NCBI GenBank assembly: GCA_965644265.1
Contig: OZ286465.1
Span: 78,678,001 to 78,742,000 of the forward strand
Reading direction: 5' to 3'
Length of the DNA stretch: 64,000 nucleotides
Source of the DNA: Glycera tridactyla
Taxonomy: Eukaryota
Shown here: piece after piece, positions 6,611 through 50,100 of the stretch
Position numbering within the stretch: the stretch's first letter is position 1
Layout: every line of letters starts with the position of its first letter
The notes under the pieces: model-generated
Told to the model about the DNA's origin: nothing
Seen by the model: only the letters and a program-made list of their open reading frames with translations
The model's database searches: none
Position numbers and translations under genes: made by a program

Positions 6611-6685
6611 ATGCCCATTATCATGAGGATGGGGGTGTTCCGTATGTGCTGTGGATTACGAGATCAGGGCCAGTATAACACAAAG
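6611..6685 (+). CDS. Candidate alternative first coding exon of raf (MPIIMR-MGVFRMCCGLRDQGQYNTK), phase 0
   Basis: In-frame upstream stop at 6587; four in-frame ATGs (best Kozak aggATGg at 6629); consensus donor AAG|GTAAGC in frame with exon 7695. Confidence 0.45.
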
Positions 6686-7694
6686 GTAAGCATATGGTGG
6701 TGAAAAAAAGCCGTATATCAAGTGGTGGTGGTGGTGAGCTCTGCAATCAGAAGGTCTCAATGCATGGACTGTGTTGGTGCTAGGACATTATTTCGTATGG
6801 CAAATTTGGCAAAATCAGCCATTCCATCATTATCAGGTTGCTTATATTTTAGCCAAATGCATAATGAAGTGACTTCAATTTTGCCGTAACTGTCATGTTG
6901 AGGCAGCCGTCGTAAAGTTGGAGGTCTACAAAAAGGTCAGAATCAGCATCTGCACTACAACCCAAATAGATCAAGAGCTGTCAACTTGGATGTTGGTGTA
7001 TACACTCAACTCAGCTCAGGCAAGATGTCTGTTGACTTTGGGGTGGCCATCTTGAATTTCAAGGTCACTGGATGCCAGAAGGTCAAATCACTTTCTAGAC
7101 AATTATTCAGAAGGTTTGAGACTGATCACCTCGAAATTCAGTTTATGCATTCCCCAGAAGCAAGACGCCCATCAATCAGCTTTCTTGTCTGTTTGGACGG
7201 CCATTTCATACTTGAAGGTTACCAAACAATAACTGGCAAAGTTTACATGCAGTCAACTCAACACTGAAGTGATTTGCACATCTTATTGATGTGATGGATG
7301 TCCAAGGTAAAGCAGTATTGTAAATCAATGTTAAATAAACTGCCGTGTCAACATGTCTGTGATAATTGGGTTATTGAAATTATTGCTGTGACATACTTTT
7401 CTTATGGTTGAAAAACTTATCATATTGGTGCAGTCAACTTGACACTGAGATAATTTGCACATCTTACTGATGCAATGAGCATTATTATAATTCATCAAGA
7501 CACTGGAACTATTGTTGTGAAGGTAGAAACCCTGTCTTGTTACATTCTATTTTCATTCCAGTTTCATCCAGTTTTAGAGGGAATCAGTGCGGTAAATCGG
7601 TAAGACATCACCCTATGCAGGATTGCAAATTTATGGCTCATCCTTTCACATTTTAGGCTGAGAGTACTCATTGTAATTATTCTGTTTGTTCCAG

Positions 7695-8033
7695 GAATAT
7701 GACTGTCTAACAAATAAGATCCATGAGCTGCAACTGAAAGAACAGGAGCTCCAGGAACAATTGAGTAATGAACGAGGATCACCACCACCTCCTCCGGAAC
7801 CGCCGACTGGCCCGCCGGTACCCGCCCCTGATGCCGACCAAATGGCGCCACAAGGGGCGGGTACGCCATCAACGCCAAATATGACGCCAAATAGCAGTTC
7901 TGGTAACCTGCCGGCGTATGCCAGTCACCCGCAGGCTGCCCAGATGATGGCGCAAGGGAGTCCGTTACTGCCACCCAAGTCACCCATGAGAACGATGGTC
8001 AAGTGTGACCTACCAAATCAACAAAAGACAGCG
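7695..8033 (+). CDS. raf: Raf exon: BRS coiled-coil C-half, Pro-rich linker, start of RBD ([19 protein letters not shown]...[20 protein letters not shown]), phase 0-0
   Basis: tttgttccag acceptor, GCG|GTAAGT donor; resembles B-Raf YEEYTSKLDALQQREQQL and [20 protein letters not shown]. Confidence 0.93.
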
Positions 8034-11000
8034 GTAAGTGCATATTTTCATCCAATTTGAGTAAATTACGTGTCCAAAATCACTTTTGGCACTATTTTCT
8101 GTAAAGTAGATTCTGGCATCTCTCTTCAATGTCAGTCAGAATTTGACTTGTGTGCCTTGAGAGAAATGCGACATCTTCAGTTTTTCGCACATCAGCCAGA
8201 TCATAATAATATGTGCAGGAGAGTTTTTCATATGTTATGACTGCAGGGCTCTACGCCAAGGGTTGCCCTACTGGCACAGGCAGGCAGGTGTTAGGGCAAG
8301 TGATTTTTCAGCCTGCCTGCCCTTCGGGCAGGTTCTCCACCATTATTTAGGCCATGAATATATGCAGGAGGGCAGGTGAGAATGACAGGGAAGGCAGGTA
8401 AAAATTACGCATCACCTGCCCAAAGGAGGGATGAAGAAAAAAGTGAGTGTAGAGCCCTGCTGACTGCACAAATGACAGAACTATCTCAGACACAGTCGTA
8501 GAAGATCATTGCAATAGCTCTTCATTCTTCTCAAAAAGATTTTTTTGAACAGGCTACATAATCTGATCTCTTGCACCAAGAACGTCATCTTCCCAAGTCT
8601 TTTTTTGCAGACAATTCGCTGCCATTTTTTGTATCCGATTTGTAGTTGAATAGTCAGATATGGAATCGAGGGCTCAATCAGTGAATGAAATGGAATGATA
8701 TCGTATCTCATCAATCGGCACAACACTATCAATCAGTACTCTGCCATACTCAGTCTCTGTATTTAGTCACTCTCTCAAATCCTGGAAAGTATGGATCTAA
8801 TTTTGGGAGAGCGAAAAACGAGTGATGCTCCCAATACACTCTCCCAAAAGGAGTGGGGCTGTCAAACTATTCAATGAAGACTGAATACTGTAAAATATAG
8901 GATGATCGGAAGCTGTTTTAAGAGACCACTTTTTGGTGACATTCTGGGCAGTCTTGTTGCAGTTTTCACTGTACCTGCTTTAGCAGAATTTAGCAGGAAA
9001 TTTTGCTCTAGGTTCAGTGCAGTCATTGGGGATTCCGACTGTGGTTTCTGCATGTGGACTTCCACCTGTTGTGCAGCAACAGCTGTAGGAGTGACCAGCT
9101 GCTTGTTGATACTCGATCAAATGCTCTTGACATCGGCCTGCGAGGTCCCAGATTACTGGTACCCTGGCCTCCACCACTGCAGACCCAGTTGGCAATATAC
9201 AGTAAAACCTGTCTTGATTGAAAAGTCACGGGACCAAATTTTTCTTCCACTTAAGACAGGATTTTGCTTAGCGCAGGACAATTATAGTGAGAAAAAACAT
9301 CCAGGCAGACCCTGGGGTATGTGCTTAAGACAGGATTTCGCCTAGCACAGGTTTACACTCAAGCAGGTTCTACTGTAGTTGGGCTGTCACTACCAATGCA
9401 GCTACATTCTGGATGATTCAGGCAATGGAAGCCAGGTCATCAATTGTTATTGGAAATTGAGCCAGATGAACTTTTGACTTTCACAGTGTTTCACATAAAC
9501 GTAATTTTTATACCCCGCTCTTGAAAAAGCGGAGTATCATAGTTTAACCTCCGGCGTCCATCCGTCCGGTCACGTTTCATGCAATAACTTTGGATTGGCC
9601 AGTCCAATTTTCTTAAAACTTCATGACTGTGTTCAATGTAAAAATCGCATTCCAGAATTTGATTTTCGTACCCATCAAAGGTCAAGGTCACTGGAGCTAT
9701 TTATAAATTTTTGTCTTTTACACCAACTCAAGCTAGCCTTGATGGATATGCACCAAACTCACACAACGTGATAACCCGAGGGTGGACCACCTCCCTTTCG
9801 ATGCATCTGACCCTAGGTCGAAGGTCAAAGTCACAGGATCTATTCATAGACTTTCCAGGAAAATGACTTTCAGAGGCACGAAGTGAGCATTAACGTGTGA
9901 GAGTATACAATACGGCGGCTTTTGATTATGCAACGCTGTTATGACGTCAGAGTGTTTCCCCACAAATGGCACTGTCTTTGACCACCGTGTGTCGCTTCTC
10001 ATAAAATATTTTTTTCTTTCTCAATGTTCTCTCAGTCAGGCATCTACAATATCCACATTCAGCAGTGTTTCAAGCAATAATGAATGTTTTTCACACAATT
10101 CGCTTATTTTTCATGCTGTTTTGGTTTAGCTCATCTTCACCCATGAAGTCGTGCTCTCTGGATCCTATCCCCACCAGTCTCTTCAAAATGTCCTACCCAC
10201 ACCTCTGTCACACACTCAAACAACTGATCAGTGCATCACTTGATGAAGGTGTCATCCCTAACCAATTAACTGAGGCCATGCTCAGTCCCATTCTGAAGAA
10301 AGCCCACCTAGATCCTGATGACCTCAATAACTACCATCTTACCTCTAATCTCCCCTATGTGTCTAAACTGATAGAGAGAGAGTTGTTGCCTCTTAATTGA
10401 ACTCACATTTGTCCAAAAACTCTCTCTGTGAGACCTACCAATCAACATAGCGTGAATATCATTCCACTGAGACTGCTATCATATATGTCCTCAATGATAT
10501 TCTCATGGCCTTAGATGCCCGAAAGTCAATCTGCCTTTTTTTGCCTTGTTCTGCTAGATCCGTCTGCAGCATTTGATACTGTTGACCACACCATCCTCCG
10601 AGACAGACTAGCCAAGTGGATAGGATGAACTGCGCAGCCCGGCTATCAATGTCCTGTCATCACCATCAACCCATCACTCCCATCCTGGAAAAACTTCACT
10701 GGCTTCCTATTGAACACCGGATCACTTTCAAAATCTTGTCCCTGACCTATAAGGCTCTTAACGGCATGGCCCCCAATTACCTGTCATAACTGCTCCATCC
10801 ATACATCCCCTCCCGCTCTCTTCGCTCCTCTGACAAAAACCTTCTAAGTATCCCCAAAACATGCTCTCTGAAACTAAGAAACTTCGCTTTCGCTCACGCT
10901 GCCCCATCTTTTACAACTCACTCCCCATGGACATCAAGCTTGCTCCTACTTTCAACACATTCAAATCTTGGCTGAAAACACATTTGTTCAACATTGCCTT

Positions 11001-14000: not shown

Positions 14001-17000
14001 AGGGGAGGTGTGTGTGGGGGGGTGTTCGGGTATCTGATCTCTGCTGTGCAGGTATTTAGCACCCTCATACTGGTACTGAACTGATGATTGCCTCCTGTCA
14101 CAATAGCTCCACATGACAGCTGGCTACACTTGACAACACCTTGTCCCATCTGCTCTGGTCCCAGCCATTACTAACCATTGTTCTGGCCTGTTATGAAGAA
14201 TAAGATCCAGAATTTGACCTTTATTTCCATATTCTGTGTTGCATCCAGTAGGGAGATGTGCATCAGTCAACACGCAATTGTTATCTTTGGCCACTTTGGA
14301 AAATGATGCTAAGCCAAATCCCCCATATCTTACAGTGAAACCTGCGACGAGAGACCACCTGTGAAGAGGAAGTTTGGAATCCTATCATTCGATTATTGCA
14401 GATATTGGCGTCATTAATCTCAAACATAGCCTCCACTGAAGGCGCCCCTCGCCTGAACGAAGCTAAGTCAAATGCCTCAAATAATGCAACACACAGAGAC
14501 GGAACTCAATTTTCATATATGGCTTGGATCCGTTGTGGCTGATGCTTATTGAAAGTCCGCATATGGCTTGCATTCATTTAGAGGTGTCTAAGGACAGCCA
14601 CCTCCTTTAGAAAAAAATCATCTCTGACAAAGATTTTTTGTCCCCCAAATTGATAGGACTTGTTGAAAGTCCCCATCCATGGCTGGAGTCTGTTATGGAA
14701 TGTGATTGATTGCATCAGTGTCAAGTTTGGTGTGGCTTGGGTGTCATTGGGGATGGTTGGGTTTTAGTGTATTTGTATTGCATATCAAGCAAGCAGTAGA
14801 AATCTTGATTGGTTGCTGATGGTACCACCATGACCACTGTTTAGAACCCTACACACCTGTAGGGCTGTGTGCTTATTGGAAAGAAGAAGACACCTCTGGC
14901 CCTCACCTGCATAGGTGGCCCCTGCCTCTGAGCTGCACCCTTATGACAAGGTGCTGAACAATATAAAAATAGCTCCAACAGGTGACATTGAACCCTGCGA
15001 CAATGAGTAGGGTGGGATCCCCCCCCCCCCACACACACACACATCAGCACCCTCCCTCATAGATGAGGGTCAGTGACAGGCTGGGTGATAATTGGGGGTG
15101 TAGCTACCTGCAGAGACTTCTATGGGAGCATGTGGTCCACCTGACCACCTATTGAGTGAGGGACACCATTTCATGAGTACTTGCTAAAGACATCCTTATG
15201 ATGACAACTGGATGTCTCCATAGTGGATACTTGTGCTTGTAGGAGTAAGACATCAAGTTATCAAGGAAGATCACCTTGCTTGATCCTTATGGAACTTCAA
15301 TTTTGGACATTCTTGTCATTTGGATAGCTACTGTGACTTGCACATTGGATACATTTCGGAACCCCACCATTCAGTTGGATATATTTAAATCTATGTAATG
15401 TCAAATTCCAAGATTCATCAAAGTTTGGATTGAATAGATGCAAATATTGGATTATTCAAGATTGTGGATCTACAAGAGAATATGGAAATATTGTTAAGTG
15501 TGTGAGAATTTCAATGCCAGTCTGAATTGGGTGATATGTCCATGAATTATTGTGGAATATCAACTTCTTTAGGAAAGAAAGTGTGCCTTTGAGTAGTTAG
15601 TCTCCCATTTCTGTTGGTTTCTGTGTTGTATCTTGTCTGTCGGTCTCGGTCTCTGTGTCTGCCTCTCTGTCTGCCTCTCTCTGTCTGTCTTTCTTGGTTT
15701 CACTGCNNNNNNNNNNNNNNNNNNNNNNNNNNNNNNNNNNNNNNNNNNNNNNNNNNNNNNNNNNNNNNNNNNNNNNNNNNNNNNNNNNNNNNNNNNNNNN
15801 NNNNNNNNNNNNNNNNNNNNNNNNNNNNNNNNNNNNNNNTTTTCCACTTCCAATGTCTTGTCCAGCCTTGAGTAATGATGGAATGAACCAGGAAGGAGTG
15901 CAGCCCCTGGAGTAGAAGCATGACTAAATGTTGGGCCTGACTAATAGCCTGGCAGAGTGAGATGCGTAGTACTGGGGGATGTTGAAGATAATGATTCATT
16001 CCAGCTCCCTCTCTCCAACAGCAATTTCCATCCTGTTCGTCATCCATAATCCTTGGATTCTACCATTGGTATATCCTGTCATAGTCATTAGCTATCCAGA
16101 AATTGATGGATTGTACTCATGATAGGCCATAATGGAGTCCATCTTTGTGCATCGGGATTCTTCATGGACTATGTTAAGTCATTACCATGTATCGCTTATA
16201 GCCATACACAGTTCAACCTGCCCTAAGCATGTACTGTACTGAGCAAAAACTTATCTTGCACAACCATGCTGTATAATAATAGCCCAATGGTGGTGGTGGT
16301 GGGGGGGGGGGGGGGGGTAATCTTCTTTTTTATGCTAGTGATCCCAGGACAAAGGTCAAGGTCACTGGATCTATTTATATGTTCTCATATTTCACAGAAT
16401 AACTCAAGTTATCATTGTTGGATATGGACCAATCCAATATGGTATATGATAACCCAATTATGGGACATGTCCTTCAGTATACAGGGCTCATGGTGTGACA
16501 TCTTAACTTCAGTGCTTGTGACCCTCGGTTGAAGGTCAAGGTCACTGCAGCTTCGAATGATCAAAAAAGATGGCATCTATGTACAATTTCAGGGTTTCAA
16601 GTTATGAAGCACTTACTATCTCTGATCTCTATCTCATATTACACATCAGGTGCCACAGCTGAAGGTTTCTTCCAGGATATCTTGATGGAGTTCAAATTTA
16701 TCACCATCATCAGCATCATCTCCAGTATTCATTGATGACACAAACATTTTTATGAAGACTTAGACAGGATTGGACATGCTACTTGGATGACGGATATATA
16801 TGGTTTTGTTTCTGTATGAGATTGAGGTTTACACGATGGTGTTTGAAGGCAGTTGTTGGCGCCATTCATCGGTGGACTGTGACGAAGTTGATGACGAAGA
16901 TGATGAGGTGTTTCATGCAACACCAATCTCGAACAATTCATCTCCGTTGATCTCGCCTCTCTTTGGTGATGTTGCATCTTTTGTGACACCGCCAAGGAAG

Positions 17001-20000: not shown

Positions 20001-23000
20001 CCAAGTGCATGTTCAGGTTCTAATTGTGTTTCAGACATGGTACCAGACAGCGTAATCATCACCACAAAAATGCTGTCTATAAAACTAATGATGCGACGCT
20101 GTCTTCTATGTTTACAGGTGCCGGTTCGACCAGGTGTAACATTAAAAGAAGCTCTTAACAAGGCTATGAAATTACGGGAGCTGAAAGCAGAAAATTGTAT
20201 AGTATATAGATGTTCTCCAAGGTGAGTTACATTAGCATCTGTCGCTCAGAAATGATGAGAAAATTTCATATTCATCATCATTTTTCAACTTTTCATAACC
20301 TCTCCAGTAGAAAAGAACTAGTCTGGTTGGAAGTGTACTCATAAATGAGAGATATATTTTTATCCATGTCTGTATTTGGGAATGCTTAGGTATGAACTTT
20401 TCAATATAATGTGCTGTGAAGTAATGACAAAATCATCTTTCTCATACTGGCAGCACAGGGCAAAGGCATGATGAAAGTTCAACTTCTTCAACAAATACTA
20501 CCATTTGAGCTGTCAACCAATCAGAAAGATTCATTCAATGATAAAAACAGTGCCCTAATGATCTGAAATAGATATTTTACTATCACTGGAGTGGATATCC
20601 CACACACAGTTTTTGCAATGAAAGGGATTGACAAGAGCCACCATTGAAGCTACTTAATATTGCCCACATCTCAGCCATCAACTGTGTGAGTCAGGGAATG
20701 AGGGGTATCAGCCAAACTCATGTGTCCATTCTACGTATTTATCAATGCACATCTCAGCAGAATACTGTATGCATACTATATTTGGACATGAACCTAGATT
20801 TTGGTTCAAATCATAATGTTTGAATTGAGGAAGTGCAATAGATAAACTTTGTCTTAAGAAGTATGTAATTGCATGTACCGTACTATCAATTCCACTTTCT
20901 TGTGACGCTCATTTTTCATGATTTCCTCTGCAAAAATGTGGAAAGAAGTCATTTTTCAGTGTGTGAAATGTGAAATCCAGTCTGTGCTCATTAAACCTGG
21001 TGGCATAAATATCAAAGATGTGTGGTGCCATTAGACGTGTGACCTGCGATTGTGACATAGAATATTGGGATTGTATGTCATCTATACATAAACAAAGTAA
21101 CTAATGTCGGGAACTCAGCAAACGTGAGTAAATACAATGTCGTCACCCGTAAAACAAGGTTGTATTCATTGCGACAATGAGTCCTCTTGTTGCCCATGCA
21201 GTTATAACATTTGTCAATATATTTTCACTTGAGAAATGTGGCAAAAAACCGTGGTCACAAACAAAGTGGAATTGACTGTAGTGTGCAAATTGAGACATCC
21301 GACCCTGAAACAAATCCATGCCAGTGGATTCAGGAGTTCCTATCTTTCACTATTGATTTTATCAATTTGATGAATGAACCCAACCCATATTTCAACTTTT
21401 GTTTCTTATGCATTTCAGAACGATAGTGTCATGGGAGACGGATATTGCTTTACTGGCTGGGCAGGAACTGTCAGTTGAAATGAAAGAACATGGTATTACG
21501 TTCCCACGCACCAGTATATCACATAACTTCGTAAGTTTCCATCAGTCCATCTGATGCCTTTCTCCTCTACTGTGATTTCAACCTTTCAGCCAATGTGTGT
21601 TTGTGATGGATGCAGATTTGCGTAATGAAAATTCTGGAACCTCTTCTGAAGAAATTGCAAGATGATGATGTTGACATATGCATCTGATGACTTTTTTTAA
21701 GGGAAATATGGTACGCCCTGTTATCAATCTATGAATTCATTGCCGCTGTCCACAGATCACTTCTTTTACTTTGACAGTGATCTTAGCCACTCTGCCTTAG
21801 ATTGAATCTCTCTCGAACTTCTGCTGTTGAATGAGTGGAACTGTTAGATCCAACTTCATTTTCTCAGAAGAAAGTTGATTTGTGCATGATTCAGGGTGCA
21901 GTGTCTGCCATCTTGGCAAAGGAAAGCAAGCGGAGGTGGATCTGTGTAGGCTGGAAGCTGAAGTCTTTGTTTGATGCAAAACAAAATTTCAAATTCATTA
22001 ATGATGCATGAAGTAGGAAGTCAGTACAGTGGAACCAGTCATGAGCAACCACCTCTTCTGAACAACTGATTTTTTGCCAATATACCTCATACACTGAAAA
22101 CCTGCAAAGAAAGACTGCTGTAAATCTCCCCCAAAAGTGGCGAAAATTGATGTTTATACAGCAAGAGATTAGTGAGTGTTGTGTACCTGTCTCTCAGGTG
22201 GAGAAGTTCACGGTACACACTCTAGGCTTTGTTGGTGGGAAGCTTTCAAGATCCATCCGAATCCTTTCATCAGCCCTTGGCAAATGCGATTCTTAGCTCG
22301 AATCATGTGACCGCCTGGTGGTGGTGGGGTTCACGTGATGATCTCCTGATACTCAGGAGGGTGTGTCGACCCTGGTCCTGATTGTACCTGTCTTGTGGCT
22401 GGGCACATTTGATCACACCTCTGACCAGTGACCACTTATTTTGAGCACTATATTTTCCATGACAAATAGGGCGGCAGCTCGTGACAGATCTCCCTGGAAT
22501 ACTTGAAGTGGGAAAATCGTCTCTGAAAAGTGTTCCTCCTCAGTAGCATTTTGTTTGATTTTATCATCTCCCTACATTTCTCATTGTACTTACGCCATGT
22601 TTCAAGAAATGCATCTGCTCTGTTTCAGGCTCGCAAGACATTTTTCACGTTAGCATTCTGTGATAGTTGCCGAAGACTATTATTCCAAGGTTTTCGGTGT
22701 ACAACCTGTGGATATCGTTTCCATCAGCGATGTGCAGAGAAAGTACCAACGCATTGTCAGCAAGGTGGTGATGACTTTGATGGAGAGATTGAGATGAGAG
22801 AGCAAGCAAAACAGTATGTCCTTATTTATATTACCTGGTCATCTGCTCATTTCTCTCCAATGTATGCTCTCTCCTTTCTTTCACTTACAGCCGATAATAA
22901 ACCCCCAAAATACAGAAAAATAAATTTTCAAAATATAAAAGCCAAAAAGATTGATAGACTTGCAGTTTACCATTAGGTTTTTTACAGTCCAAGTATTGTC

Positions 23001-24094: not shown

Positions 24095-24125
<31 letters not shown>

Positions 24126-32040: not shown

Positions 32041-32101
<61 letters not shown>

Positions 32102-35100
32102 AGAAATTCCTACATTTCACTTTCTGCAAAGGAAAAAGTGGGCACAAGCCATCAACAAACGCTTATCTGAATCTGGGATTTCCTGTTTCAACTATTCAGG
32201 TCATGCTAAAGACATTCAGATAATGACTAAGGACTGAAAAAATATCAGTCAGCTATTGAATGTAGAGTGCACAAATCCGAAATTCAGTAAGATCTGAATA
32301 TGCTGGAAACCTTGTGCCAGAGAAGAGATAATTTCAAGTTGAGTGACAAGTCTGAGAGAAAGTTTGACCTGGAATGAACTTTGCTGAACAGGTATGATCC
32401 CGTCATTGTTAAAAATGGGTTTTGGCTAAATCAGAGTAAGATCAGATATCATCAAGAGTGGCAAATATTTGTGGGTCATCGTCGTGGCAACAAGATAAAT
32501 GTCCCATCATGGAAGAAAGCGAAATGCACCGCTGAAGAGCATATTTCACAGAAAGTGAGGCTGGTGATTACATGGGTTTCCCTTGATTCTGTTTCTCATT
32601 TCTAGGACCCTTATTTCTTGCAGGAATTTGCTCGCGCCCTACAAGTCCACCATTCTCAGAGTCATGCAGGTAGGCGTTGTCATGGAAACCGCTGAGTCAC
32701 ATGCCTCAATCAACACCAGGTGTCAGTGCATCATGCAGCTTGTCAGCATCAGTAGCCATTATGTTTCAATCTTATTTTTTGCCATTTTTTTAGCCTAAAA
32801 TCGCCATTATGTCAGCCATTAATTTATGCTAATTGTGTAGCATCTCATTTGTATTTTCAATGCTATGTTAATAGCGCATTTTTTTCCGTGAGATTTAGAC
32901 ATGAGTGCATGGTTTTTTATGGGTACGAGATGTACCGGTGGAGCACACAATCATTCATGGTTGGTTCTCTGCTTGCTATTTGACGGTTTATGAATGCTGC
33001 ATCTTGGTTTAGAGAATTTTTAGTTGCGTTTCACCAGGGCTTTCACCTGTATTGATACTAATCTCAGAAACAAAATCCAATTTGGGGTAAAATTGGAACC
33101 AGATGAAATAGAATGTCAGTGGTATTGAATACATAGACAATTTTTGCCACATAAACATGTGATATGACCCAACTCAGATGAAGCTTTAAATCAAGAGGCA
33201 ACTTCACAATTCCCGTCAAATCCTCCTCAAATCATAACATCCTGTAATCATGATATATTGTCGAAAAAATTCAGCCAGACATTTTCACCAAACCCTGAAT
33301 ACCACAGGTACATTAAATTATGACCGTTCCTTCAACAGCCCGATACATTCATATTGCAATTAAACAATTTTTCTAGCAGCAGTCATTGTCCACCAATGTA
33401 ATTTTGATTGTAATTGTTATTGATTGAAAATTGCGAATCACTCATAGTAGGTTTTCCTTTTCATGCATATGGTGATAAGATGAATTATATCTGCATCCAT
33501 TTGCCAAACATCTTCATTTGCTAGAGATATATATTCATCTGGCATCAAAACATGCCATGGGCATTGTCCCTTGGGCAGGTGGAGTAGCCTCCTATTGAAC
33601 TATAGAACACATATAAATAATCTGTTTGTAAGGTAGGCCTTAGTGTGGAGCCCTGTCTGCTCAAGTCCAGATTCTATAAGAATGGATCGTGGTCAGAATT
33701 CAAATGCCACACGTCTCATCCTATCATTTATAATGTGCAAAGGGTGATTTGATAAATGCTTAAACCTCAAACTTGAACTTTATGATGCCTGTATAATTCC
33801 TGATTAGCCAACATTGGTGTAAGCCCTCATCATATACATGGCTCAACATTAGCCGAAATATCTTGGAGGTAGCTGGCCCCTAATTGGATATTATTGAAAG
33901 CCATTGCCTAATATTTGTAGCCAACAAACACAATGTCTATTACAAAATCTCAACATTTTTTTTGGGGGGGGGGGGGGGGGGCATTTGCTACTAACTTAGA
34001 TATGATTGCGAGAGGGTAAGTTTAGTAGCTTGGCTACCCACAGGTAGCAATGTAGAGGCCTGATGTTTGGTATACCAACCTAGTTTGGACAGCGGTCTTG
34101 AGATTCGAGTGCTCTGTTTATTCCCAGAACCAGAAGTAAGGGTGCATGTATTAATAACTGATCTTATTCAGAATTTGAGTTTATTATGGAAGGATATCTA
34201 TATAGTCAAACTTGTCTATAGAGGCCACCTTCGATTGTATGAAAATGTGGCCTTTGCAGGTGGCCTTTGTCGTGACTTCATTCACTATAGATAATACTAT
34301 CATGGTCTCTGCTGGAGGTGGCCTTCGTAGGCAGGTGCTCACTCGAGTGTACAATGATGTCATTTAGAAGAAACAATTATCCAAGGATATGATAAAACAT
34401 GCTGAAAATGTCCCCTCACATCCTTGAAATTATCTATTCTGATACACCCAGCCAGATTGCAGGAACTTTTCATTAAATTTTGTCATCCACTTTCGTAGAA
34501 GCGTCCCCACACTCATCTCTAATAGAAAGAGCACTATCTCATATTACAGAAGTGGATGATTTCACTGGTCTCATATTCTTGATATAGTACGTCCAGTATC
34601 AATTAAATGCAGGCAAGGTGATGCTAAATAATTCAGAGGAGTTTTGTGTGTATAAAAACAAGTGTTTGTGATGTCCACAAGCTCAATGCTTTTATGGTCA
34701 GCTTCAAACTTGGGTGTTCCTCAACCTCCTGTGAAATATGAACCATAGAATGCAGATTTAGCTGTACAAGCCAAGCACTTAACAAGAATCTATTCTCACC
34801 TAGGTTGGGTGGAGAAGTTGGGATAAAAACAATCTGTTCACTCTGTACAAGAGTGCTCCCCCAATCTGACGATTGCTGATCATATGACTGAATTTTGAAC
34901 TTATTATTGAAATAGACTGATCACATCACCAAGGTAGCGAAGGAATTACTTCAGACGTATATATTTCAATCATGAATTAATTTTATATCGCTATACATTT
35001 CTCATGGTATATTTCTTCCAAAAATGTATCACAACCTAGATTATGTGATCAAAGATGAAGTCTCGGCATCATTCGTTTTTATCTATCTAGCGGAGTGATT

Positions 35101-38100
35101 TCACCTTGAATCATAATTCCACGATGATTCATGTCAGAATATGAATGGCACTGATTTTCGACCCGTGTTGCAACTCTGGTGTTGATTGAGCATATGACAT
35201 CAACTTCCGAAGTATATTGCCAGTTGCTTTCTTGTCGATGATTATGTGAAATAACCTGGACCTTTAACCTTACCTCTCTTGCTTCAGAAGTCTTCATCTT
35301 GTGGCCACCACTCTGCCATCTCAAGCTGATTCGTATATATTGCGCTGCCTGTACCTTGTCTCGTCCATGTCTGCGTCCTTGTTTATGGTAGCGGTCAGAA
35401 TTAGTTCTAGGCTCCCTCCCAAGAGTTGCATCCAGAGAAGGCTACGGAGTATCACACATTTTTTATTGAGCATGGGCCCTTTTTCAAGGCAATTAGAAAA
35501 GGGAGTAGTCTTGGAGGATCCCACCAAGTCCATTGCATTGCATATCGCACACATGGGGATGACGTGACATTGAAAGAAAACCAACCCAAGCTGTCACAGA
35601 TCATGATGCCCCCAAAATCAACAACACAGTTCAACGTTCAATAGTGAGTCAGCTCATTTTCGAGAAATTTGTGAAATGAGTGTTTCTTTTCCGCCTATAG
35701 AAGGGGGCATAAGGCCCCGATTTTGGAAATCCTGGATGCAACACTGCCTCTCTTATGATATATCCTGTCCATCCACATTACTGTGGGTCTTGAAACATTT
35801 TATCTGCTGTGGAATATTATGCAAAGGTGAATTCCAAAATCCACCAGACCTCTGGATGAGTCTGATATCTTGCATCATGAGGTCGCCCTGAAAAGATTTC
35901 TATGATTTCCATGAACAATTTGGGAGGGGAGCATATTCAATGCCCTTCCTACATTCAGCCTTCAAAGAATCCACACAAGTCTAGCTCCTGGCTACAGCAA
36001 AAAATTGGAATAGAAACAGATGAGCGAGATTGATTATTATACATTTATTCGTTAGAGAAATGGGCAGTGCTTTGCTAGGTACAGCCGTCCCAGTGATTGT
36101 ATAGCTAGTCACCCAATTCCAGCCTTATCCCGATAAAGCTATGATATGTCAGATCAGCGTTAAAATGAGTTATAGATACCTTTAGAAAAATGCGAGTCAC
36201 CACTTCCTTCCCCCTCAATTCCATGCTTTGAGTGTATATTTGATAGCTCGAAACCAGGTAGTTGTTTTGCGGACTAAGCAGTAATTCATGGAAACATTAA
36301 TTGGCATGCAGAGTGGGTGGATACAGCAATTTTTTGCAGGTCGTGTTGTTATCTCAAGTGCTCTATGAGCAATAGATATGGAATAAACTCAGGTTATTAC
36401 AGCTCCTATATATGTCATGAATGAAGAGAAAGGGTCCACAGTGTATCAGCTTCTTATCATTTTGAATATGTCATGAAGAAATCAGGTTTTTGATGTTTTG
36501 ATTAATTTATTTTATGCTATGACCTATTGTTGGCTGATATTAAGGGAGCCAGAACTAGAAATGTATGTCCATATGTGACTGTAAAATGTACCCATGATTA
36601 TTTGATAAAATTTTCATATTCCACATGGTGATATTGCTTTGAGGAAGTCACAATGACTGGCTCCACATAAATAAAACTGACAAATAAATCCTCAACAGTT
36701 CCACCTGGAGGGATTTGATAGAATTATCATACAATATAATCATGGGGTCATGTACTCATACCACCGACAATTTTCATTAAATTCATGCCATCTTTTAGAA
36801 TATGCAATTTGGATGTCATTATACAGTGAAACCTGTGAAGAGAGACCGCCCTAAATGTCACCAAAAAGCGGTCTCTCAAAGAGGTGGTCTCTCAGAGGTA
36901 TATTTGACCGTGTCAAATAGAAAAGCTTCCCTGGAATAGCGGTCTCCTGTCAGAGGTGGTCTCTAGTCAGGGGGTCTCTCGTCGCAGGTTTCACAGTATT
37001 GCAATTTGAAAGTCATTAGGGTGACATATTTCAAATAGACATCCATAAGTCTTATCTTCCAAAGTCGGCATTGTCTGTGGTATAACGCTTCTTGTGTCTG
37101 CTTGAAGATTGCTATTCCAGATTGCTACTGGTGTATTTGCCTAATCTGTGCCTGATTTGATGAAGATAGTAGATTTTCTATTGCTTCCCATGGATATGAT
37201 ATTGCCGTATTTATTGAGTCACTTGTGCGAGGTACATATCAAGCTGTACTGTGGTGTACCTTGAGTGTGTCAGTGGAAATTAAAGAACAAAAGTATGTAA
37301 TGTCATTACGTCAAAATCATAATGCTTGGAATCTCTGTAACATTCCAAATGATTGGCACTAATTGTCCAAGTAAATCTGGCCATCATTTAAACTCCAGGA
37401 TCTTCCAGGTGCTCCTCATAGTTATACAAAGTTTGGACAGGCAAGGAAAGGCTACACTAGAAAGTGAATGCAACCCGATATGATTACTCTTTCTGACATG
37501 AACTTTGGAATTTCATGCATAACATTACAACTAGAAATTCAGGATCCTCTCTTTTGATCATTGCAAATTCTGCAATCATTACGCTGTAAAATTGGTGCCA
37601 TTTTGGTCATCGAATGTGGGCATACCTGATATTGGAACAAAATCAAAGGTATGACCCATTTGCAATTGAGGACTTCGGAAATGCCATCTGTTTTTCCATG
37701 AATATCTGTGGTGTTCCGGGAAATAAGACTAGTTTGGACTAATTTCAATGCTTGTAAACGTACTTGTGATGTCAGACCTGCCTCAGATGTATGGTAATTA
37801 TCACCTCTGGTCCAGTGATAAGGTGGCCATTGAAGGGTAACTTCGGTGCTAGTAGTTGGGCAGTTCTTCATTCCTCCAACCAAACATACAGTATGAATGA
37901 ACAATTAACAACGGAATGTCAGCAAAAAAGCTGTCACTTAAAAGAGGTACATTCTCTTGGTAGAGGTATACTTGACTATGTCAGATAGAAGAGCTGACTC
38001 AAAGAAGGGGTCACATCAGTGATTGTCTTTTGTCAAGAGGTATATTTTGTCATAGGTTTCACTGTTTTGGTCACCATCAGTTGGTCCTGCAACACATAGC

Positions 38101-41100
38101 TGTATAATCTATCTTTGGGCCTGCTACACTTGTGGTAATTGACAAAGGTCTGATCGCAATAGAGAGTAGCTGACTTAATTGAGTTAAGTATATATTGCTG
38201 GAAAAAAGTGTGAACCAGAGCAGGTAAGAGATTGAGTGCACAAAACCGACTATAAGAGTTCATGTACATGGTAAGTATCTCCTTATAGACGTATGTGAAT
38301 ATGATAAAGTGGCATGGCACAGAGAGCTTGAATGATATCGGTCATTGTGAGCATCTCAGCATCTCAGCGCCCATTACTACCAACTGGTCTGACCTACGAA
38401 AAATCACAAATGAAGGATTATTTACAAAGATGGTGATTTGATATTGGACAACATTGGTGATGAACATTTTCTTTCAGCTTATGGTCACCATCACATGGAT
38501 AATGACCCATTCTCAACTTTCCTCTATTTTTCTTTATATGTATTTTTTAGCTTCTAGGAATTGCATGTCTGCACTTGATGGTTTTAAGTCTGTTCAAGAA
38601 GACATAACCTAGGGTTCGCTTTGACTGCTATCGAGGGGGGACATTTGTCTGATTTATTTTCAAAACTAGAGACAACACCAGGGCTGCCAAGTATTCCGCA
38701 TTTTCCGTAACTAGTACGAATTTAAGGCAAACTCCGCAAGTTCCGATTCGCCATCGCTGGTTACGATTGTGGCATCCGCCGGCTGAAATCCCGATAAAAT
38801 CGTTGAAATCTGGTGAAAATCCGGCTTTATTGCGCGAAAAGACGTGATCTCAGGGTGCCGCCATCTTGCGATGTTGTGGAGGTAGAATCGCGCGAGACTC
38901 GAGGTGATCCAATCGCAGTTCAGCGAATTAGCGAGAGATGGCGGGGTTTCATGAAAAATGCGAGTTTCACAGCGCCACCCGTGTTGGTAGCGGAAATAAT
39001 CGGAACTATCGTAATTCGTCAAATTTGCGACAGATGGCGGGGTTTCATGCAAATTGCGAGTTTTACAGCGCCACACGTGGTGGCGGCAGTATTTATCGGA
39101 GCTATTACTCAGCTAGGGGCATTACAAAAGCTTACTGAAAATTGGTTACTGAAAATGGACCCAGGTTACTGAAAATGGGGTCTCGGGGTACTGAAACGCG
39201 TTTCCGGAGGTTGGCAGCCCTGCGACACCCTCGGATCAGGGGACACTGGCATTGGATGCCTGGACATAATATCTTATATTTCAACAACATTTTCATAGAG
39301 AATGAATAAAATTGAGATAAATTTTGTGCTGAAAACAGTGCAGAGAAGGACAGATCTGTTGTTTTGTTGTTTGACAATTCTTTATACTCGATCCAAATGA
39401 GGAATTCAAATTCAAAGATCTGGTAATGAAGATTCATGAAATGACAATAGAGTAGATGCTTGTACTTTATGATGGTCAGAGCTCGGTTACTGAGGTCAGA
39501 GATCAACATCCCACTGGCCTGACTGGTTGTCAGATAGCATCACTCTTGCTGCAGCAGTCGATATGAAACGGGTCAAGCACCCTAATAATGCATCAAATGA
39601 TGCAGGGGCACAGCTGAGAGCCAACATTGATGACTGTCATGAATTTTTGTCTCCTATCTGCACCATTACCATTCTGAGATTTTTGTTGATGGAGTTGAAC
39701 TGTTTTTGCATGTTTGGTTGTGAATGGTTTTGTTGTATTTGAGTGAAGGGCATTCAACAGTTCAAGAAGTGATTACATCTATATATCAGGAGTTGATGCA
39801 GATGAAAAAGTCAGATATAAGATTTTATCATGTAAATAGAAGTAAACTTGTCTACAAAGACCACCTTTGAAGAACAAACAGTGTTTTTGTAGACATGTGG
39901 CATTTGTGTAGAAAATACTGTATCATAGGCACTGCTCAATGGGCCTCATAGGTAGGGAGCCTTTGTACAGGCCTATTCATCATGCTACAATTCAGAAAAA
40001 AAGATAAAATGTCTCATAATTTGGACTACATGAGTGTGTACAGGCCTACTCATCATGAATCAATTCAGAAAAAAAGATAAAATGTATTATAATTTGGACT
40101 ACATGAGTGTGTACAGGCCTACTCATCATGAATCAATTCAGAAAAAAAGATAAAATGTTTTATAATTTGGACTACATGAGTGTGTACAGGCCTACTCATC
40201 ATGAATCAATTCAGAAAATAAGATAAAATGTATTATAATTTGGACTACATGAGTGTGTACAGGCCTACTCATCATGAATTAATTCAGAAAAAAAGATAAA
40301 ATGTATTATAATTTGGACTACATGAGTGTGTACAGGCCTACTCATCATGAATTAATTCAGAAAAAAAGATGAAATGTTTTATAATTTGGACTACATGAGT
40401 GTGTACAGGCCTACTCATCATGAATCAATTCAGAAAAAAAGATAAAATGTATTATAATTTGGACTACATGAGTGTGTACAGGCCTACTCATCATGAATCA
40501 ATTCAGAAAAAAAAAATTGTCTACAAAGACCACCTTTGAAGAACAAAGAGTGTTTTTGTAGACATGTGGCATTTGTGTAGAAAATACTGTATCATAGGCA
40601 CTGCTCAATGGGCCTCATAGGTAGGGAGCCTTTGTACAGGCCTACTCATCATGCTACAATTCAGAAAAAAAGATAGAATGTATCATAATTTGGACTACAT
40701 GAGTGTGTACAGGCCTACTCATCATGAATTAATTCAGAAAAAAAGATAAAATATTTTATAATTTGGACCACATGAGTGTTGCTGTGTATATCCAGACACA
40801 TATTGCAACCTCTTCATTCAAAATCGATCAAAAATTCTCTGGAGGGATTTCTGATACATGGAGATAGCAAGAGCAATCATTTTGTTATCAATTTGCCCAT
40901 CTGATGTTTTTGCATGAATCATAGTTGTGTGCTTGGCTTTATTATTGCTGTTGTATTTGCTCTATTTTTGGCCTTGCCTATTTATTTATGTTGTTGTATA
41001 GGTATGTGTACTTTTCAACTTTCAGGTACTCGGGTGGTTATGGCACACATGGAATTTCCTCCAGTCAGATTTCGAAACCCAGTTGACCATTGTATAGTCC

Positions 41101-44100
41101 TCATTCAAATCAAATTGTCCCCACTAAAACATCCAAGTCATGAGAAGAATATGACACAAATTTGAACCCATGGACAGACTTGTGTCAGTAGTATTCTGAC
41201 AGGTTCTTGGGCTATGACACATAATGGGTTTCATCCCTTGAAAATCGTAGCACATGTGCAAAGATTAGTAATGTGTGGAAAGTTCATGTGATGCCATAGT
41301 CTATTTTGCACCAGGAGTACCAGAAAGCTTTGCATGCATGTGCTCTTTGTTGACTGGCTTTAGCTTGCATTCTCGCCTTTGCAGATCTTACACTGACTCG
41401 CGTTTGTAGCGCCAAAGAGTTTAAACGCCACCTAAGTGAGACAGCGGCTATGTCATCGGTGCCCGCACACTGCCGGCAGCTCTCGCAGCCCTGCTCCTCA
41501 CACTACAATGATACTCATATGCCATTACCAAACATCCACTCACAACATAAAGGTATCGGATTCACACCTGCTCATGCTTACACGTATTCACACCACGGGT
41601 GTTGATCCCGCCCTCCTACTCACAAGGTTGTGGTGGTTGGTTAACAATCAGATTACTCCCTCTCCTACTTTCCTGGCCGATGTATATTCAATTACCTAAA
41701 TGTTTTCCTGTCAATTTTTCTTTCTAATTTGTCATCTGCAATACACGATTTATCATTACTAAAAGCTTTTTTCGGACTGTGATCAATCCAGGAAAACATG
41801 GGTGTTGGATTATACACAATAGCTATTGTTCAAGTTCTCCATTAATTAATCACTAATCACTTTCACTATATTTCGACTTTCAGGTAGCTATCTATTTTTC
41901 TAATGGGATAACACCCTAACATGGTTTCACACTTATTCAAGCTCCTTTAACCCTGTAGACCACTCGTGATGTTTAACAGGTGGATGGGTATTTTGTAACA
42001 GGATCAACTGCTGATACCATCCTTGTCTAGAAATAGTATGTCCTTCAACTAAATTTTAGCCGTTGGCTTGGTGGAGTCCCCATCTGAAGGGAAATTTAGC
42101 AGCTACCCAACTTGAGCCGTCTTGATTCTGTTATGCATGGATAAGTTACTATTCAAACTCATTCGAGAAGCATGGAAGGTAGGGATGCACTCAGAGGCAG
42201 CTCATTAACAAACTCTTATGAATCTGGAATTTAACGTAGTTGCAAGGAGTATGACCAGTTCTGCCATCAAACCACAAATTCCGGGATTATTCGTCTTTGA
42301 GATGTGCATATACAGTGAAACCTGCGACGAGAGACCGCCCTAAATGTCACCAAAAAGCGGTCTCTCAAAAGAGGTGGTCTCTCGTCGGAGGTATTTTTGA
42401 CTATGTCAAATAGAAAAGCAGTCCTGGAAAAGCGGTCTCCTGTTGGAGGTGGTCTCTCGTTGGGGGTCTCTCGTCGCAGGTTTCACTGTATTGGTGAATA
42501 TCACCCCATCATGCATTGAATGCCATCAATCATTGACATATCAAGGTGCAAACAGCTCATCCATAGCCTGTGAGAGGCGATGAAAGCTCTCCCTTAATTG
42601 CTCAACCGTGTGTGCCAAATCTGATGACAGGATTTCCTCAGATTCGGTTCTGAATAGACGCGCGTGCCATCTGCTCATGTTTTCATGCCCTGCACATATA
42701 TACAGCAATATACAATATACCAGGACTGGAAACTTGTGTTTGCAGCATGCGCTTGATGAGATCTCCAACTATCAAAGGCATTCAAGTGCCACAACGGATG
42801 ATAGCATGTGTGGATGAAAGCTGGCTTAACAACGTCAAAGATGAAAAATTTAGTTTGGAGATTCAATAAAAGGATTCTGTGAGGCAGTTTCTCAGGAATA
42901 TTGGATTCCTGTATCCCACATCTGAAGGAATTACAGGTAGATTTGAATTCATCTCAGAAACAGGACATAGTATTACAGCACATCCAGAATGCCCGCTTCT
43001 TAAGGACCATCAACTCTAGTATGCTACTTGTGAATCCACATCAGTTCCCTGTCAAGGGTGAGGAATGCATCAGTAGCCAGGAAATCCTGGGATTTAATGC
43101 TACGAGGTTTTGAAACATGCATCAACAACATGTGATCATCCAGAGCTGCAAAAATACTGCAAGCATCAAAGCTTATTCAAAGGGGATAGTGAGATCAGAT
43201 TTCAGCAGCGCTTTAATGGTAGGTTTCTCAACAAGATTTCTAGGACAAGATGAACTTGGCCAAGCAGCTTGTGAAGTCAGTAGCTTCAAACTGAAAGCGC
43301 AAGGAAACAGACTTCCCTCTGAAATCTTCTCTGCAACATTGGCCAACTGTGAATTGAGGATGCAATCAAATATTTCAGCATAACCACCTGAGAATGAATG
43401 AATGCGGATGATTGCTGAAATATTCATTCTCCTGAATAGACTGCAAGTATCATGGTGCTACACCACTAAGAGTTCACCAACAACACCATTGTAATACAAT
43501 TACAAAAGTCGGATACAGGCTTTCGTCAAAGTTCATGATAATTCATCCGAGCAGGAGGAAAGATGGAGGACAGAAGAGGATTCCCATTATATGGATGATT
43601 TCCTATTACTTGCATGCTGGTAACCCACTAATACTGGTGATATACCACCAACAGCATGCGCATCATATCGAGTGGTGAGAAGTACTCGATGCTATATAGA
43701 GTCAGTACTCAGTATATAGCTATTGACCGATCTGCATTACATTTCAGCATGGACTCATGTGATCCTTTGGCAGCTGCTTAAGAATTAGTCAAGATTTAGT
43801 ATCTTGCTTAACAAGAATGTCAACTGGAGTGCAATATCATTCATTAGCACGGGACCTAACATGGTGACAAGTCACAGGTCGATTGAATGCTTGCTTTTTA
43901 TATTAACCCCGCTTGTAGTAACATCCGCATTGACCGCCAATAGCAACCAAAATAGCACCATTGACCGGAGAGGATCGGTTCATTCTTTTCAAATCACATC
44001 ATGGTTGTTTGGAGAATCATGGCGTTCAAGGTCATTGAGGAAGTCAAGCTGAAGGTCACACTCTTGTTGTAGCTGGCAGGTCTCAGTGGGGTCAGCAGGA

Positions 44101-47100: not shown

Positions 47101-50100
47101 TGTTCCACTCTAGTACCAGTATGTAGTGATTCACCCAGACAGGTGGGAGCATTTAGGGGAAATCATGCTATTGGTACATCATCTGAAAAGTACAGTCGAA
47201 CCCCCTCTAAAGACCACCTCTCTATAAAGACCACCTTCCTGTAAAGACCGCCCTGAACTGCAACTGTGGTAGTATTTTCTACAGTAAATGACCTCTCTAC
47301 AAAGACCACCTCCCTATAAAGGCCACTTTTTGGTTCGGCCGATGGCGGTCTTCATAGGGAGGTTCGACTGTACATTCGTTTCAAACCACTGAAGTACTTG
47401 AAATTATACTTGAAACATGGCTTGGATTGTTGCAAATTTTCAAGGTGAATTTTGAATTCTTGGATATTTAATAACAGTCTCTCATCATACATGCATATAG
47501 AGTTATTTTTGATTTTCATAGGCTTTGCACATATGAAGCTTAGTTTTTCTATTTCTTTGAGATATTACCGATATTCTCAAGTTTGATATTTGCCACAATT
47601 TAGCTGTATAAGATAGGGCAAACGCAAATGGAATGAGTGAGTATGGCAGCTTACCCTCTGATTAGGTAGATATATCTCGCTGGTTTCCATGCTGGAGGTA
47701 CGCAGATCTGACAGTCGGGAAGTATGCTGATATGTTTGCTGATTGCTTATGTTCACAAGGTTCGATAGGTCCCGGGTCATTAGCATTACCGAGTACGCAG
47801 AACAGCCAGAGTCCTGGCGGAAGTCCAACCAAGGGCCATAGCCACAGCGCCCATACGTCACCCACGAATACTGCCAAACTAAGGCCTAGGGCTCGCTCTG
47901 CTGAATCAGACAACAAAAAACTGGTAAGTGCCAGATCACTTTCAGGCAAAGTTTCAGGTATAGTTTTCAGGTGATCAATGGAACCTAGATACCGCTGCTT
48001 CAGATCCTCTGATGTTTAAATCTTGTTTATGATAAAACTTTAAAAAAATTGATTTCAGGTTATTTCCTTTGTAGTGACTTCCATTCCTGTTTGATTAAAG
48101 TACCACATGATGATATATCACTGCCACGTATGATACCTTGTGATGGATGTATTTCTCTCAGGAATGTGATAGTTTGAACTTGAAAGTGTATTTGATGATG
48201 ATAATATTATATTTTAGTTCATGAAAATCGGGCCAGACTCTGTGCAGATAGAGCACAGAGTCGGTATAGAGTTAAAGTAGCAAGTAGTCACAATTCCTTT
48301 ATCCACAAAATATTGGTGAAAACTGCCCCTAGTCAGGTTTGCAGGATTTTTGTTTGTCAGCTTTTCACATCCCTGTTCTCTCCATTAGCCAGTGTATGCA
48401 CCCATAATCTGTCAGGTATTCAAAATAGAAAATCTACACTATACCGATATGGATGTGGTGATTTTACATTCATAACTGTCTTTGGCTGCTAATATGAGTT
48501 GTTTAAGACTATTCTGAGGTATGGCTTCAATTCTGTGGTATGCCAGCCATTATGATTCCTCGGAGATGATCTCAATTTCTGGTCCAAAAGTGGTTAGGTC
48601 ATGCTGGACAGAAATTAGAAAAACTCATCTTTCATCATTGTGAACACTACTCATTATACTTTGAAACTGATGAAGATGACGGAGGACTGGTGAAATTATT
48701 GGACTTGCACAATAGCTTGGTAGAATTGAATTTTTGCCAAACATTGGTAACCTTAGATGTGTATTTGCCACAGATAACAACACTAAACCATTATCATTAC
48801 TATAATGTTAATTGTAGCTAGTTATCGCTGCAGGTGTGTATAATAGTCATATTATTTCTTGTAGCAACAGCGATCACGGCGAGATTCCAATGAAGATTGG
48901 GAGATTCCGAATCCAGACATTCTGATTGGTCCACGAATAGGCTCAGGTTCATTCGGAACTGTATATCGAGGGCAGTGGCATGGGCCGGTAGCAGTTAAAC
49001 GATTAAATGTGAAAGATCCCACTCCTGCACAGATGCAGGCTTTTAAAAATGAAGTAGCTGTGCTTAGGTAAGTGTATCTAATTTTATGTTGAAAATAGCC
49101 TATGTAGCTCAATACATATGAGTATTTAGTGAACTGTAGATTTTTATTTTCATCTCAAATCTGATCATTGTATTTGAAAAGTGTCCTATATATGTAGGAA
49201 ACGTGTACTACATGCATATTCATTTTTTTTTTTGTGAATGCATGTGCATATTTCTGAGTGCATGCACGTGTAGTGTGTGAACACCAATCATCAACTGCCC
49301 ATGGCATATTTTATTGAGAGTGATTAAGATGGGGGGGGGGGGGGGGGTACCTTTGCAAACTGTTTTGTATCAAGTCATAATATTCCAGGATCCAACTTCA
49401 GAAATGACGATCAATGGACAGTCCGTATGAATTGCTGGAAATTGCACTTTCTGAGGAATTTGGTACAAATACTGAATACGAGAAACTTGAATCGTTCAGA
49501 GATTTACTGCACATTTTATGCCAACTTGTGACGATTGTTTGTTTGTTTGTTCATTTGACTGTGTTGACTGATCTCAGCCCAGTACCATTGTCAGAGCCTG
49601 AAAGTCCCAGTCCTTTCAGTGCTGTTGTTAGCTATTTGTGGGTGACAGGTCTAATCTTGGCAGGGCGCAACCCTCGATCAGCCATTCTTGATGTTTGCAT
49701 GTGTGTGTATGCTGAGGAGAGGTCTCAGTGTATCTGGTTTGTAGTCACTCATTATAGCAGCCCCGCTAACCTAGGACCATTGTTTTTAGTTCTTAGCGAT
49801 AGACATTCACTCAAGATTGTTTAGCAAGAGAGTTGAGTTCACCACCAGTTCCATGAGTTCACACCCTTATTCAGTTGATTGACACTCTTGAACCATTTCT
49901 GTTTCAGAAAAACACGACATGTGAATATCTTATTATTCATGGGTTGTACTTCAAAACCGCAGTTAGCAATTGTAACGCAATGGTGTGAAGGATCAAGCCT
50001 TTACAAACATTTACACGTCAATGAAACCAAGTTCGAGATGAACACGCTAATCGATGTTGCACGACAGACAGCACAAGGCATGGAGTGAGTAGTGTCTAAT

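Follow-up and report, generated by a model that had tools for sequence, protein, structure and literature searches.

Candidate alternative exons in the regulatory half of a B-Raf-type gene of Glycera tridactyla

Can a single Raf gene supply differently regulated kinases through a choice among exons? The question is raised by a stretch of 64,000 nucleotides (nt) from Glycera tridactyla (NCBI GenBank assembly GCA_965644265.1, contig OZ286465.1, positions 78,678,001 to 78,742,000 of the forward strand; the whole stretch is called the window below and is numbered from its first letter). An initial annotation had described there one Raf gene with 14 core exons and, in its introns, five further open frames (C1 to C5 in the following), interpreted as a modular isoform kit of swappable N-termini and stacked hinge cassettes in the regulatory half of the protein. 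All five frames were recovered at their coordinates with the boundary dinucleotides reported for them, and their splice phases did fit the Raf chain without creating a stop at any junction. The reading that I favour, at a probability of roughly 0.55, keeps a part of the kit: two of the five frames, C1 and C3, probably lie on real features in the regulatory half of one B-Raf-type gene, namely an alternative first coding exon and the position of a duplicated exon for the regulatory region CR2, and the remaining three (C2, C4, and C5) are probably chance. The general view of one gene whose isoforms vary only in the regulatory half is a reasonable one.

Motif scans and lists of open frames placed one B-Raf-type Raf gene on the + strand of the window, with the CR2 motif RSTSAP at 26955, GSGSFGTV at 48940, HRDLK at 50560, DFG at 52627, and RSASEP at 55517. 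The family assignment follows from a Ras-binding domain succeeded by a C1-type domain, from the predicted 14-3-3 site pattern RSxSxP occurring twice, once in CR2 (exon E6a) and once as RSASEP after the kinase (exon E14), and from a kinase domain closest to Raf. A search against solved structures returned B-Raf for all of its top matches, with RAF1 next.

Relatives for comparison were found by searching exon E8 against a 50%-representative protein library, which yielded 150 Raf proteins or fragments, and the contigs of those matches gave genomic DNA from five other species. These were Lamellibrachia satsuma (GCA_022478865.1; locus L001), an annelid (PMC12890243); the closest relative, represented by one 93.6-kb ENA contig (ERZ26222911, ctg1017855; loci L002 to L005), which is 94% identical to the window in E8 and 84% in E7; one further species each for L006 and L007; and a species with one 1.28-Mb contig (L008, L017, and L018). 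The species of ENA ERZ21788760 and ERZ22147071 are among these relatives. Alignment with the relatives at the DNA level was confined to exons, at 69-81% identity; the species are thus distant ones, and their introns do not allow a base-by-base comparison.

A candidate first coding exon in intron 1

C1 (6611-6685, + strand) reads MPIIMRMGVFRMCCGLRDQGQYNTK/gtaagc, with the slash marking the exon border. It has ATG start codons at 6611 and 6623 and a donor, AAG/GTAAGC, that ends it in phase 0 and allows it to join the phase-0 acceptor of E2 (7695-8033). The closest relative carries a counterpart, MRMCSFCCGLRITKGPKK/gtaagg, at L004:3256 (the same site as L005:12614), and tblastn aligned its MRMCSF--CCGLR to MRMGVFRMCCGLR of the window with an E value of 0.43 in 20 kb. 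In the relative the DNA reads ATG AGG ATG TGT AGT TTC TGT TGT GGG CTC AGG ... AAG/GTAAGG, and in the window ATG AGG ATG GGG GTG TTC CGT ATG TGC TGT GGA TTA CGA ... AAG/GTAAGC. Within the shared CCGLR, the codons TGC TGT GGA TTA CGA and TGT TGT GGG CTC AGG differ at six positions, and six of the six differences are synonymous. When all six frames were scanned, the pattern CCG[LIVM]R was found once in the whole window and once in ~46 kb of the closest relative; both sites lie on the Raf strand, follow an MRM..F, and are followed 12-13 codons later by an in-phase GTAAG.

The position of the element was deduced from the closest relative, in which the canonical exon 1 (L005:5590-5700, ..HQHPPSMYLQ/gt) supplies helix 1 of the N-terminal region specific to B-Raf and is followed, 7 kb further on, by the C1-like exon and, after another 3.4 kb, by E2 at L004:6653. 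As the canonical exon 1 of the relative is that far upstream, the C1 element sits inside intron 1. In the window the second helix of the same region is encoded by E2, and no exon for the first helix was found in 1-7694, so the canonical first exon must be located upstream of the window. C1 thus combines its own ATG, a donor phase that matches E2, and a position in intron 1, and an alternative first exon is its natural reading because the upstream AGs are out of phase for an internal cassette. A rough joint chance of ~1e-3 was obtained for the match by combining the tblastn E value with the required strand and intron and with the in-phase donor. Most probably, C1 is a real first coding exon that serves as an alternative to the canonical one.

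The initial annotation had proposed C1 as an alternative, pre-anchored N-terminus. The alternative first exon held up in one relative; the Met-Gly myristoylation start proposed for it did not, since the window has Met-Gly only from the third ATG and the closest relative has Met-Cys at that place. What is kept instead is the Cys-Cys pair, which in the window and in the closest relative lies near the N-terminus beside hydrophobic and basic residues and has the sequence pattern of an S-acylation site. If used, C1 would depend on a promoter within intron 1, and its peptide, with the conserved core MRM-x-x-F-(x-x)-C-C-G-L-R, would take the place of the canonical first exon and of the helix encoded there. 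The two Cys, which have basic residues beside them, are predicted to be S-acylated, which would place this isoform at membranes before Ras activation; half of the segment through which vertebrate B-Raf pairs with KSR would be missing from the isoform.

Short N-terminal motifs of this type are familiar from other proteins. GAP-43 begins with MLCCMRR, a short Cys-Cys acylation motif. Alternative first exons with short acylation motifs are also reported for the N-terminal variants of KChIP (PMC3973911). C1 resembles both in that the Cys pair falls within the first 7-14 residues, has hydrophobic and basic neighbours, and is encoded by a small alternative first exon; it differs in that acylation is a prediction from its residues, and in that the Met-Gly start is not conserved in the relative. 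A search of the open-access literature retrieved no naturally lipid-anchored Raf isoform.

A second CR2 exon in relatives and a possible one in the window

The CR2 exon E6a (26837-26999, + strand, 163 nt) runs from phase 2 to phase 0 and ends at a strong donor, GAG/GTATGT. Three relatives carry a second exon directly or further downstream of their copy of E6a, here called E6b, which also runs from phase 2 to phase 0. In the closest relative it is located at L003:5168-5375, ends in ...GDEHSTSAPNVHSVVSVDTPFE/gtatgt, and comes directly after the first copy (E6a and E6b together span L003:4905-5375); in L006 it is located at 10151-10508, ends in ...SEAHSTSAPNFHTLLAGQDSLE/gtatgt, and begins 74 nt after the first copy (span L006:9872-10508); and in L018 it is located at 4028-4205, ends in ...EENRATSAPNVHHVANLDTQ/gtaggt, and lies 3.1 kb downstream (span L018:821-4205). 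The donor of E6b is strong in all three. A core of (H/R)(S/A)TSAPN(V/F)H, of which TSAPN is shared with E6a, takes the place of the 10-residue 14-3-3 site of E6a, and the codons for HSTSAPN differ between L003 and L006 at 9 of 21 bases, all of them synonymously, which points to selection on the peptide. Since both copies have the same phases in L003, L006, and L018, they are not joinable in frame and one or the other must be used; E6a and E6b of the relatives therefore look like a conserved pair of mutually exclusive exons.

At the corresponding place of the window lies a frame (27085-27298, + strand, 214 nt, GC content 0.56) of 71 open codons, which, like the 163-nt E6a before it, runs from phase 2 to phase 0. 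Its acceptor, ...TGCTTTTGTTTCAG/T, is found 84 nt after E6a, as compared to 59 and 74 nt in two relatives, and it shares position, acceptor type, and phases with the E6b of L003 and L006. A frame of 71 codons delimited by a good acceptor and a phase-0 GT has a chance of roughly 0.03-0.1 of containing no stop. C3 (27263-27298), which the initial annotation had listed as a cassette, constitutes the last 36 nt of this frame: its phases (0 to 0) do fit between the donor of E6a and the hinge microexon (32624-32669), and it is reread here as belonging to the longer frame, which occupies the place of the duplicated CR2 exon. Two other ways of splicing C3 were considered and rejected. A 34-nt microexon at 27265-27298, bridging phase 0 to 1, is ruled out by the true microexon and is also not conserved in L003, and a donor of E6a at 27003 joined to C3 at 27263 would create TAG as the junction codon.

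The frame at 27085-27298 contains neither RSxSxP nor TSAPN, and MAFFT set its APAPAL against TSAPNV, a placement that is not significant. Its homology to E6b is positional only. The frame may be a strongly diverged exon or a relic, and this species may use the whole 214-nt exon, the in-frame 36-nt piece after E6a, or neither.

For the relatives, an effect of E6b on regulation can be predicted from its residues. The exon swaps the RxRxxS context for basophilic kinases for an acidic one (DEHSTS, EAHSTS, and ENRATS), which should alter the kinase that phosphorylates the CR2 site and the strength of 14-3-3 binding, and E6b would in this manner change or weaken the 14-3-3 lock that holds Raf shut. 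Tandem duplicated exons used in a mutually exclusive manner are known, for example, from tropomyosin and from FGFR2 (IIIb/IIIc). As in those pairs, the homologous CR2 exons of the relatives share an intron, phases, and a core motif, and inclusion of both would shift the frame; unlike in those pairs, the second copy in the window has no significant similarity to the E6b exons, and exclusivity is read here from genomic phases. No report of a mutually exclusive CR2 exon pair in any Raf gene was found in the open-access literature.

Taken together, C1 and E6b raise the tentative possibility that in this worm group both locks of Raf are set through exon choice, one by a putatively acylated Cys-Cys N-terminus and the other by a mutually exclusive CR2 exon whose 14-3-3 site would be under other control or would no longer bind. 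14-3-3 bound at CR2 keeps Raf autoinhibited, and Ras releases and activates Raf at the membrane; work on these two controls has until now relied mostly on engineered or disease mutants. If the proposal is true, a conserved CR2-swapping pair and a membrane-anchoring start would mean that animals set both Raf locks by splicing and promoter choice, and the two-lock isoforms would correspond in nature to engineered membrane-targeted Raf and to CR2 gain-of-function mutants and would lend themselves to testing models of Raf autoinhibition.

Alternative exons in the regulatory half of Raf are in themselves of a known kind, and what is new here are the candidate first exon C1 and the second CR2 exon. 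Of the alternative hinge exons of mouse B-raf, 8b lowers kinase activity and is limited to eutherians, and 9b raises it and is conserved among vertebrates (PMC3008692). The likeness is that these, too, are alternative exons of a B-Raf-type gene, placed between CR2 and the kinase domain, that alter the inhibition of the kinase by the N-terminal half and affect the regulatory part only. Exons 8b and 9b, however, are cassettes, whereas the cassette candidates here (C4 and C5) lack support and the conserved variation consists of a CR2 exon duplicated in the relatives and an alternative first exon; no sequence similarity to 8b or 9b was found.

Open frames in long introns and competing explanations

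All five candidates fitted the chain: C1 and C2 end in phase 0 and match the phase-0 acceptors of E2 and E3 (20118-20221), C3 fits as described above, and C4 and C5, each running from phase 1 to phase 1, can be placed between the microexon and E7 (47760-47923). The intron between the microexon and E7, however, holds 155 phase-1 symmetric AG..GT open frames of at least 120 nt, and four separate places in it equal C4 in pyrimidine tract and donor. The phase fit of the candidates is no better than chance and, given 155 phase-compatible frames in the same hinge intron, is no evidence when taken alone. This result shows that phase-compatible frames in long introns are mostly chance, which matters for the reading of such scans.

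Codon usage was assessed with a score trained on the ~700 codons of the core exons, which has low power and gave values below 0 for two true exons. Intronic open reading frames (ORFs) used as a null (n = 129) had a mean score of -0.14 and a maximum of 0.24. C2 scored -0.11 and was null-like, C4 scored 0.05 (~90th percentile of the null), the frame at 27085-27298 scored 0.09 (~95th percentile), and C1, a short frame, scored 0.08. C5 scored 0.325, which exceeds all 129 null ORFs and is highest in the frame claimed for it. A Pfam search of all candidate frames returned no match, and nothing resembling the five candidates was found among the 150 Raf representatives.

C2 (16836-17186, + strand) is an ATG frame of 117 codons with a good donor, which had been proposed as a 'Ras-independent' start. 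This proposal was not borne out: the E2-E3 introns of two relatives contain nothing that corresponds to C2, a protein word search returned no homologue, and the codon score given above is null-like; C2 is probably a chance intronic ORF. C4 (41385-41552, + strand, 168 nt) and C5 (44073-44324, + strand, 252 nt within an ORF of 163 codons) had been put forward as stacked hinge cassettes, a claim that likewise lacks comparative support: nothing like either frame occurs in the CR2-to-hinge introns of two relatives, which are complete, or in the stretches of 8.5 kb and 3.2 kb that precede E7 in two others, although the neighbouring E7 is conserved at the same loci, C5 has no homologue in the protein word search, and the frame-specific codon signal is within the chance range. 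C4 also has a weak donor, GTATCG, and is probably chance. Altogether, C2, C4, and C5 are most likely chance open frames in long introns.

A gene model of Lamellibrachia satsuma (P0008, 388 residues, L001:4942-8707) begins inside the microexon, without the N-terminal half of Raf, and includes a predicted 42-residue exon of phase 1 to 1 (7492-7617) between the microexon and E7. By eye, its N-terminus appeared to resemble C4, but a score of 30 did not stand out from the null (24.6 ± 4.9), and the cassette is similar to neither C4 nor C5.

Several observations weigh against a reading in which C1 and the CR2-exon position are real and the other three frames are chance. The conservation of C1 is a 13-residue gapped match to one relative, and the E2-bearing contigs of the other relatives are too short, or begin at E2, for a comparison of C1. 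An ungapped tblastx of the two first introns with low complexity filtered missed C1 on account of the two-codon gap in the match, and without the filter the comparison was swamped by CA-type low complexity. A degenerate DNA pattern for C1 gave seven chance matches in JGI metagenome contigs, none of them near E2. A profile of the E6b exons of three relatives matched E6a and not the frame at 27085-27298, and Smith-Waterman z values of that frame against the E6b of the relatives were 1.2, 0.6, and -0.2, which is the level of shuffled sequences. All support for exon use in this gene comes from the genome sequence; a search for sequencing runs matching 26750-32749 listed none. On the side of the frames taken for chance, a young lineage-specific exon would escape comparative tests given the distance of the relatives, and the call on C5 may be wrong because C5 has the top raw codon score of any intronic ORF.

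The first alternative is that none of the five frames is used, the C1 match being chance or a non-coding element, the frame after E6a a dead relic, and the gene the source of one main protein. The genomic nature of the support, the shortness of C1, and its single relative favour this explanation, as does the loss of the CR2 motif and of detectable similarity in 27085-27298, which moreover ends at a weak donor (GTCGGA, also the donor of C3). Nevertheless, the C1 pair shares start codons, a Cys-Cys-Gly-Leu-Arg core with synonymous changes only, and an in-phase GTAAG at the same distance, and a frame of 71 codons between a good acceptor and a phase-0 GT is open by chance at the low rate given above; a gene that uses none of the five is doubtful.

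Another explanation holds C5, with or without C4, to be a young lineage-specific hinge cassette that is invisible in distant relatives. The outstanding codon score, a good donor (GTAAGA), a length of 252 nt, and an exon-like GC content of 0.57 speak for it, and the vertebrate hinge exon 8b, restricted to eutherians, offers a precedent (PMC3008692). Against this stand the frame-specific contrast of C5, which at 0.25 is inside the null range (95th percentile 0.38), an ORF that continues for 68 codons beyond the donor, a poor pyrimidine tract (0.55), and the lack of a homologue in the relatives and in protein searches. C5 is more likely chance than a lineage-specific cassette, and a young cassette at this place is unlikely.

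A full modular kit, with all five frames used to give Ras-dependent, Ras-independent, pre-anchored, and differently 14-3-3-regulated kinases, is very improbable: all five do have AG/GT or ATG/GT boundaries, fitting phases, and stop-free junctions, none of them overlaps a repeat detected within the window, the raw codon score of C5 is high, and P0008 indicates that hinge cassettes are at least annotated in the group, but phase fit is common by chance, neither the orthologous introns nor the two protein libraries contain a counterpart of C2, C4, or C5, C3 and C4 have weak donors, and the cassette of P0008 is a prediction that resembles neither C4 nor C5.

The core exon chain, the hinge, and the introns

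Exon borders were chosen from splice dinucleotides, frame continuity, and comparison with the relatives. The rebuilt chain has 14 core exons within the window (7695-55666), the same count as in the initial annotation once the hinge microexon is included. The 13 exons E2 to E14 without the microexon splice into an open frame of 693 codons that ends at 55666, and no stop was found at any junction codon of the chain, candidates and microexon included.

All exons are on the + strand. E2 (7695-8033) contributes helix 2 of the N-terminal region specific to B-Raf, a linker of low complexity, and the beginning of the Ras-binding domain, the remainder of which is encoded by E3 (20118-20221) and E4 (21419-21530); the Pfam RBD model matches both E3 (E value 5.6e-10) and E4. 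E5 (22629-22813) encodes the C1-type cysteine-rich domain (Pfam C1_1, E value 2.5e-13) and is followed by the CR2 exon E6a, the microexon, and the disordered hinge exon E7. The kinase domain and C-terminal tail form a block from E8 to E14: E8 (48865-49067), E9 (49908-50084), E10 (50535-50581), E11 (52589-52707), E12 (53169-53300), E13 (54195-54329), and E14 (55469-55666), which contains RSASEP and has the stop codon at its end. In single-exon searches, Pfam kinase models matched E8, E9, and E12. Intron positions of the Raf gene differ among the related species: E3 and E4, separated in the window by an intron of 1.2 kb, form one continuous exon in the closest relative (L004:11638-11844), and both E2 and E5 are split in two in L006.

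Because the donor of E6a is in phase 0 and the acceptor of E7 in phase 1, a bridging exon of 3n+1 nt is required. The position and phase of the E7 acceptor are conserved in two relatives, and E7 itself is 84% identical in L002, 77% in L001, and 53-84% across the loci of the relatives. Possible exons of 3n+1 nt from this intron were listed and set against the corresponding intron of one relative, which left one clear pair. The microexon of the window (32624-32669, 46 nt, 15 residues plus 1 nt, phase 0 to 1, donor CAG/GTAGGC) starts cag/GAATTTGCTCGC, and its counterpart at L003:9850-9889 reads EFARNFADGHISS and shares the donor heptamer. Lamellibrachia has a third counterpart at L001:4951-4999, which reads DLAREFPQAATASGHP. 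A microexon-like match in L007 was discarded as chance, having no splice sites and no EFAR start.

The arrangement is reminiscent of human BRAF, in which exon 9 has 37 nt, runs from phase 0 to 1, and starts with DLIR. Like exons 8, 9, and 10 of that gene, the exons described here comprise a CR2 exon that ends in phase 0, a microexon of 37-49 nt that starts (D/E)(L/F)(A/I)R, and a hinge exon entered in phase 1; the microexon of the window differs in having 46 nt, and the resemblance is limited to the first four residues.

An assembly gap of 133 N (15707-15839) lies in the E2-E3 intron (intron 2), 7.7 kb after E2 and 997 nt before C2, with a CT-rich simple repeat on its left flank. It overlaps neither a core exon nor a candidate, though an exon could be hidden within it. 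The chain has no frame that crosses it, as the gap is intronic and the frame of C2 is closed on the gap side by a stop at 16788-16790. A second assembly gap, of 131 N, is found at 58984-59114, ~3.3 kb past the Raf stop codon.

The first 2 kb of the window have a GC content of 0.505 and a GC skew of -0.38. A long low-complexity tract rich in CA and CT, which reads as runs of Thr, His, and Pro, is present upstream of E2 in both the window (1-1100) and the closest relative (L005:7600-8900), where it is located in intron 1. A short interspersed repeat occurs in ~8-11 copies in the Raf introns and flanks (36808-37003, 42296-42493, 51908-52103, 39844-40779, and others), and its copies share a recurring 17-residue translation. 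In the closest relative, the CR2-to-hinge intron carries a tandem array of ~50 copies of a 59-nt unit (L002:4000-7100), which underlies minus-strand ORF calls.

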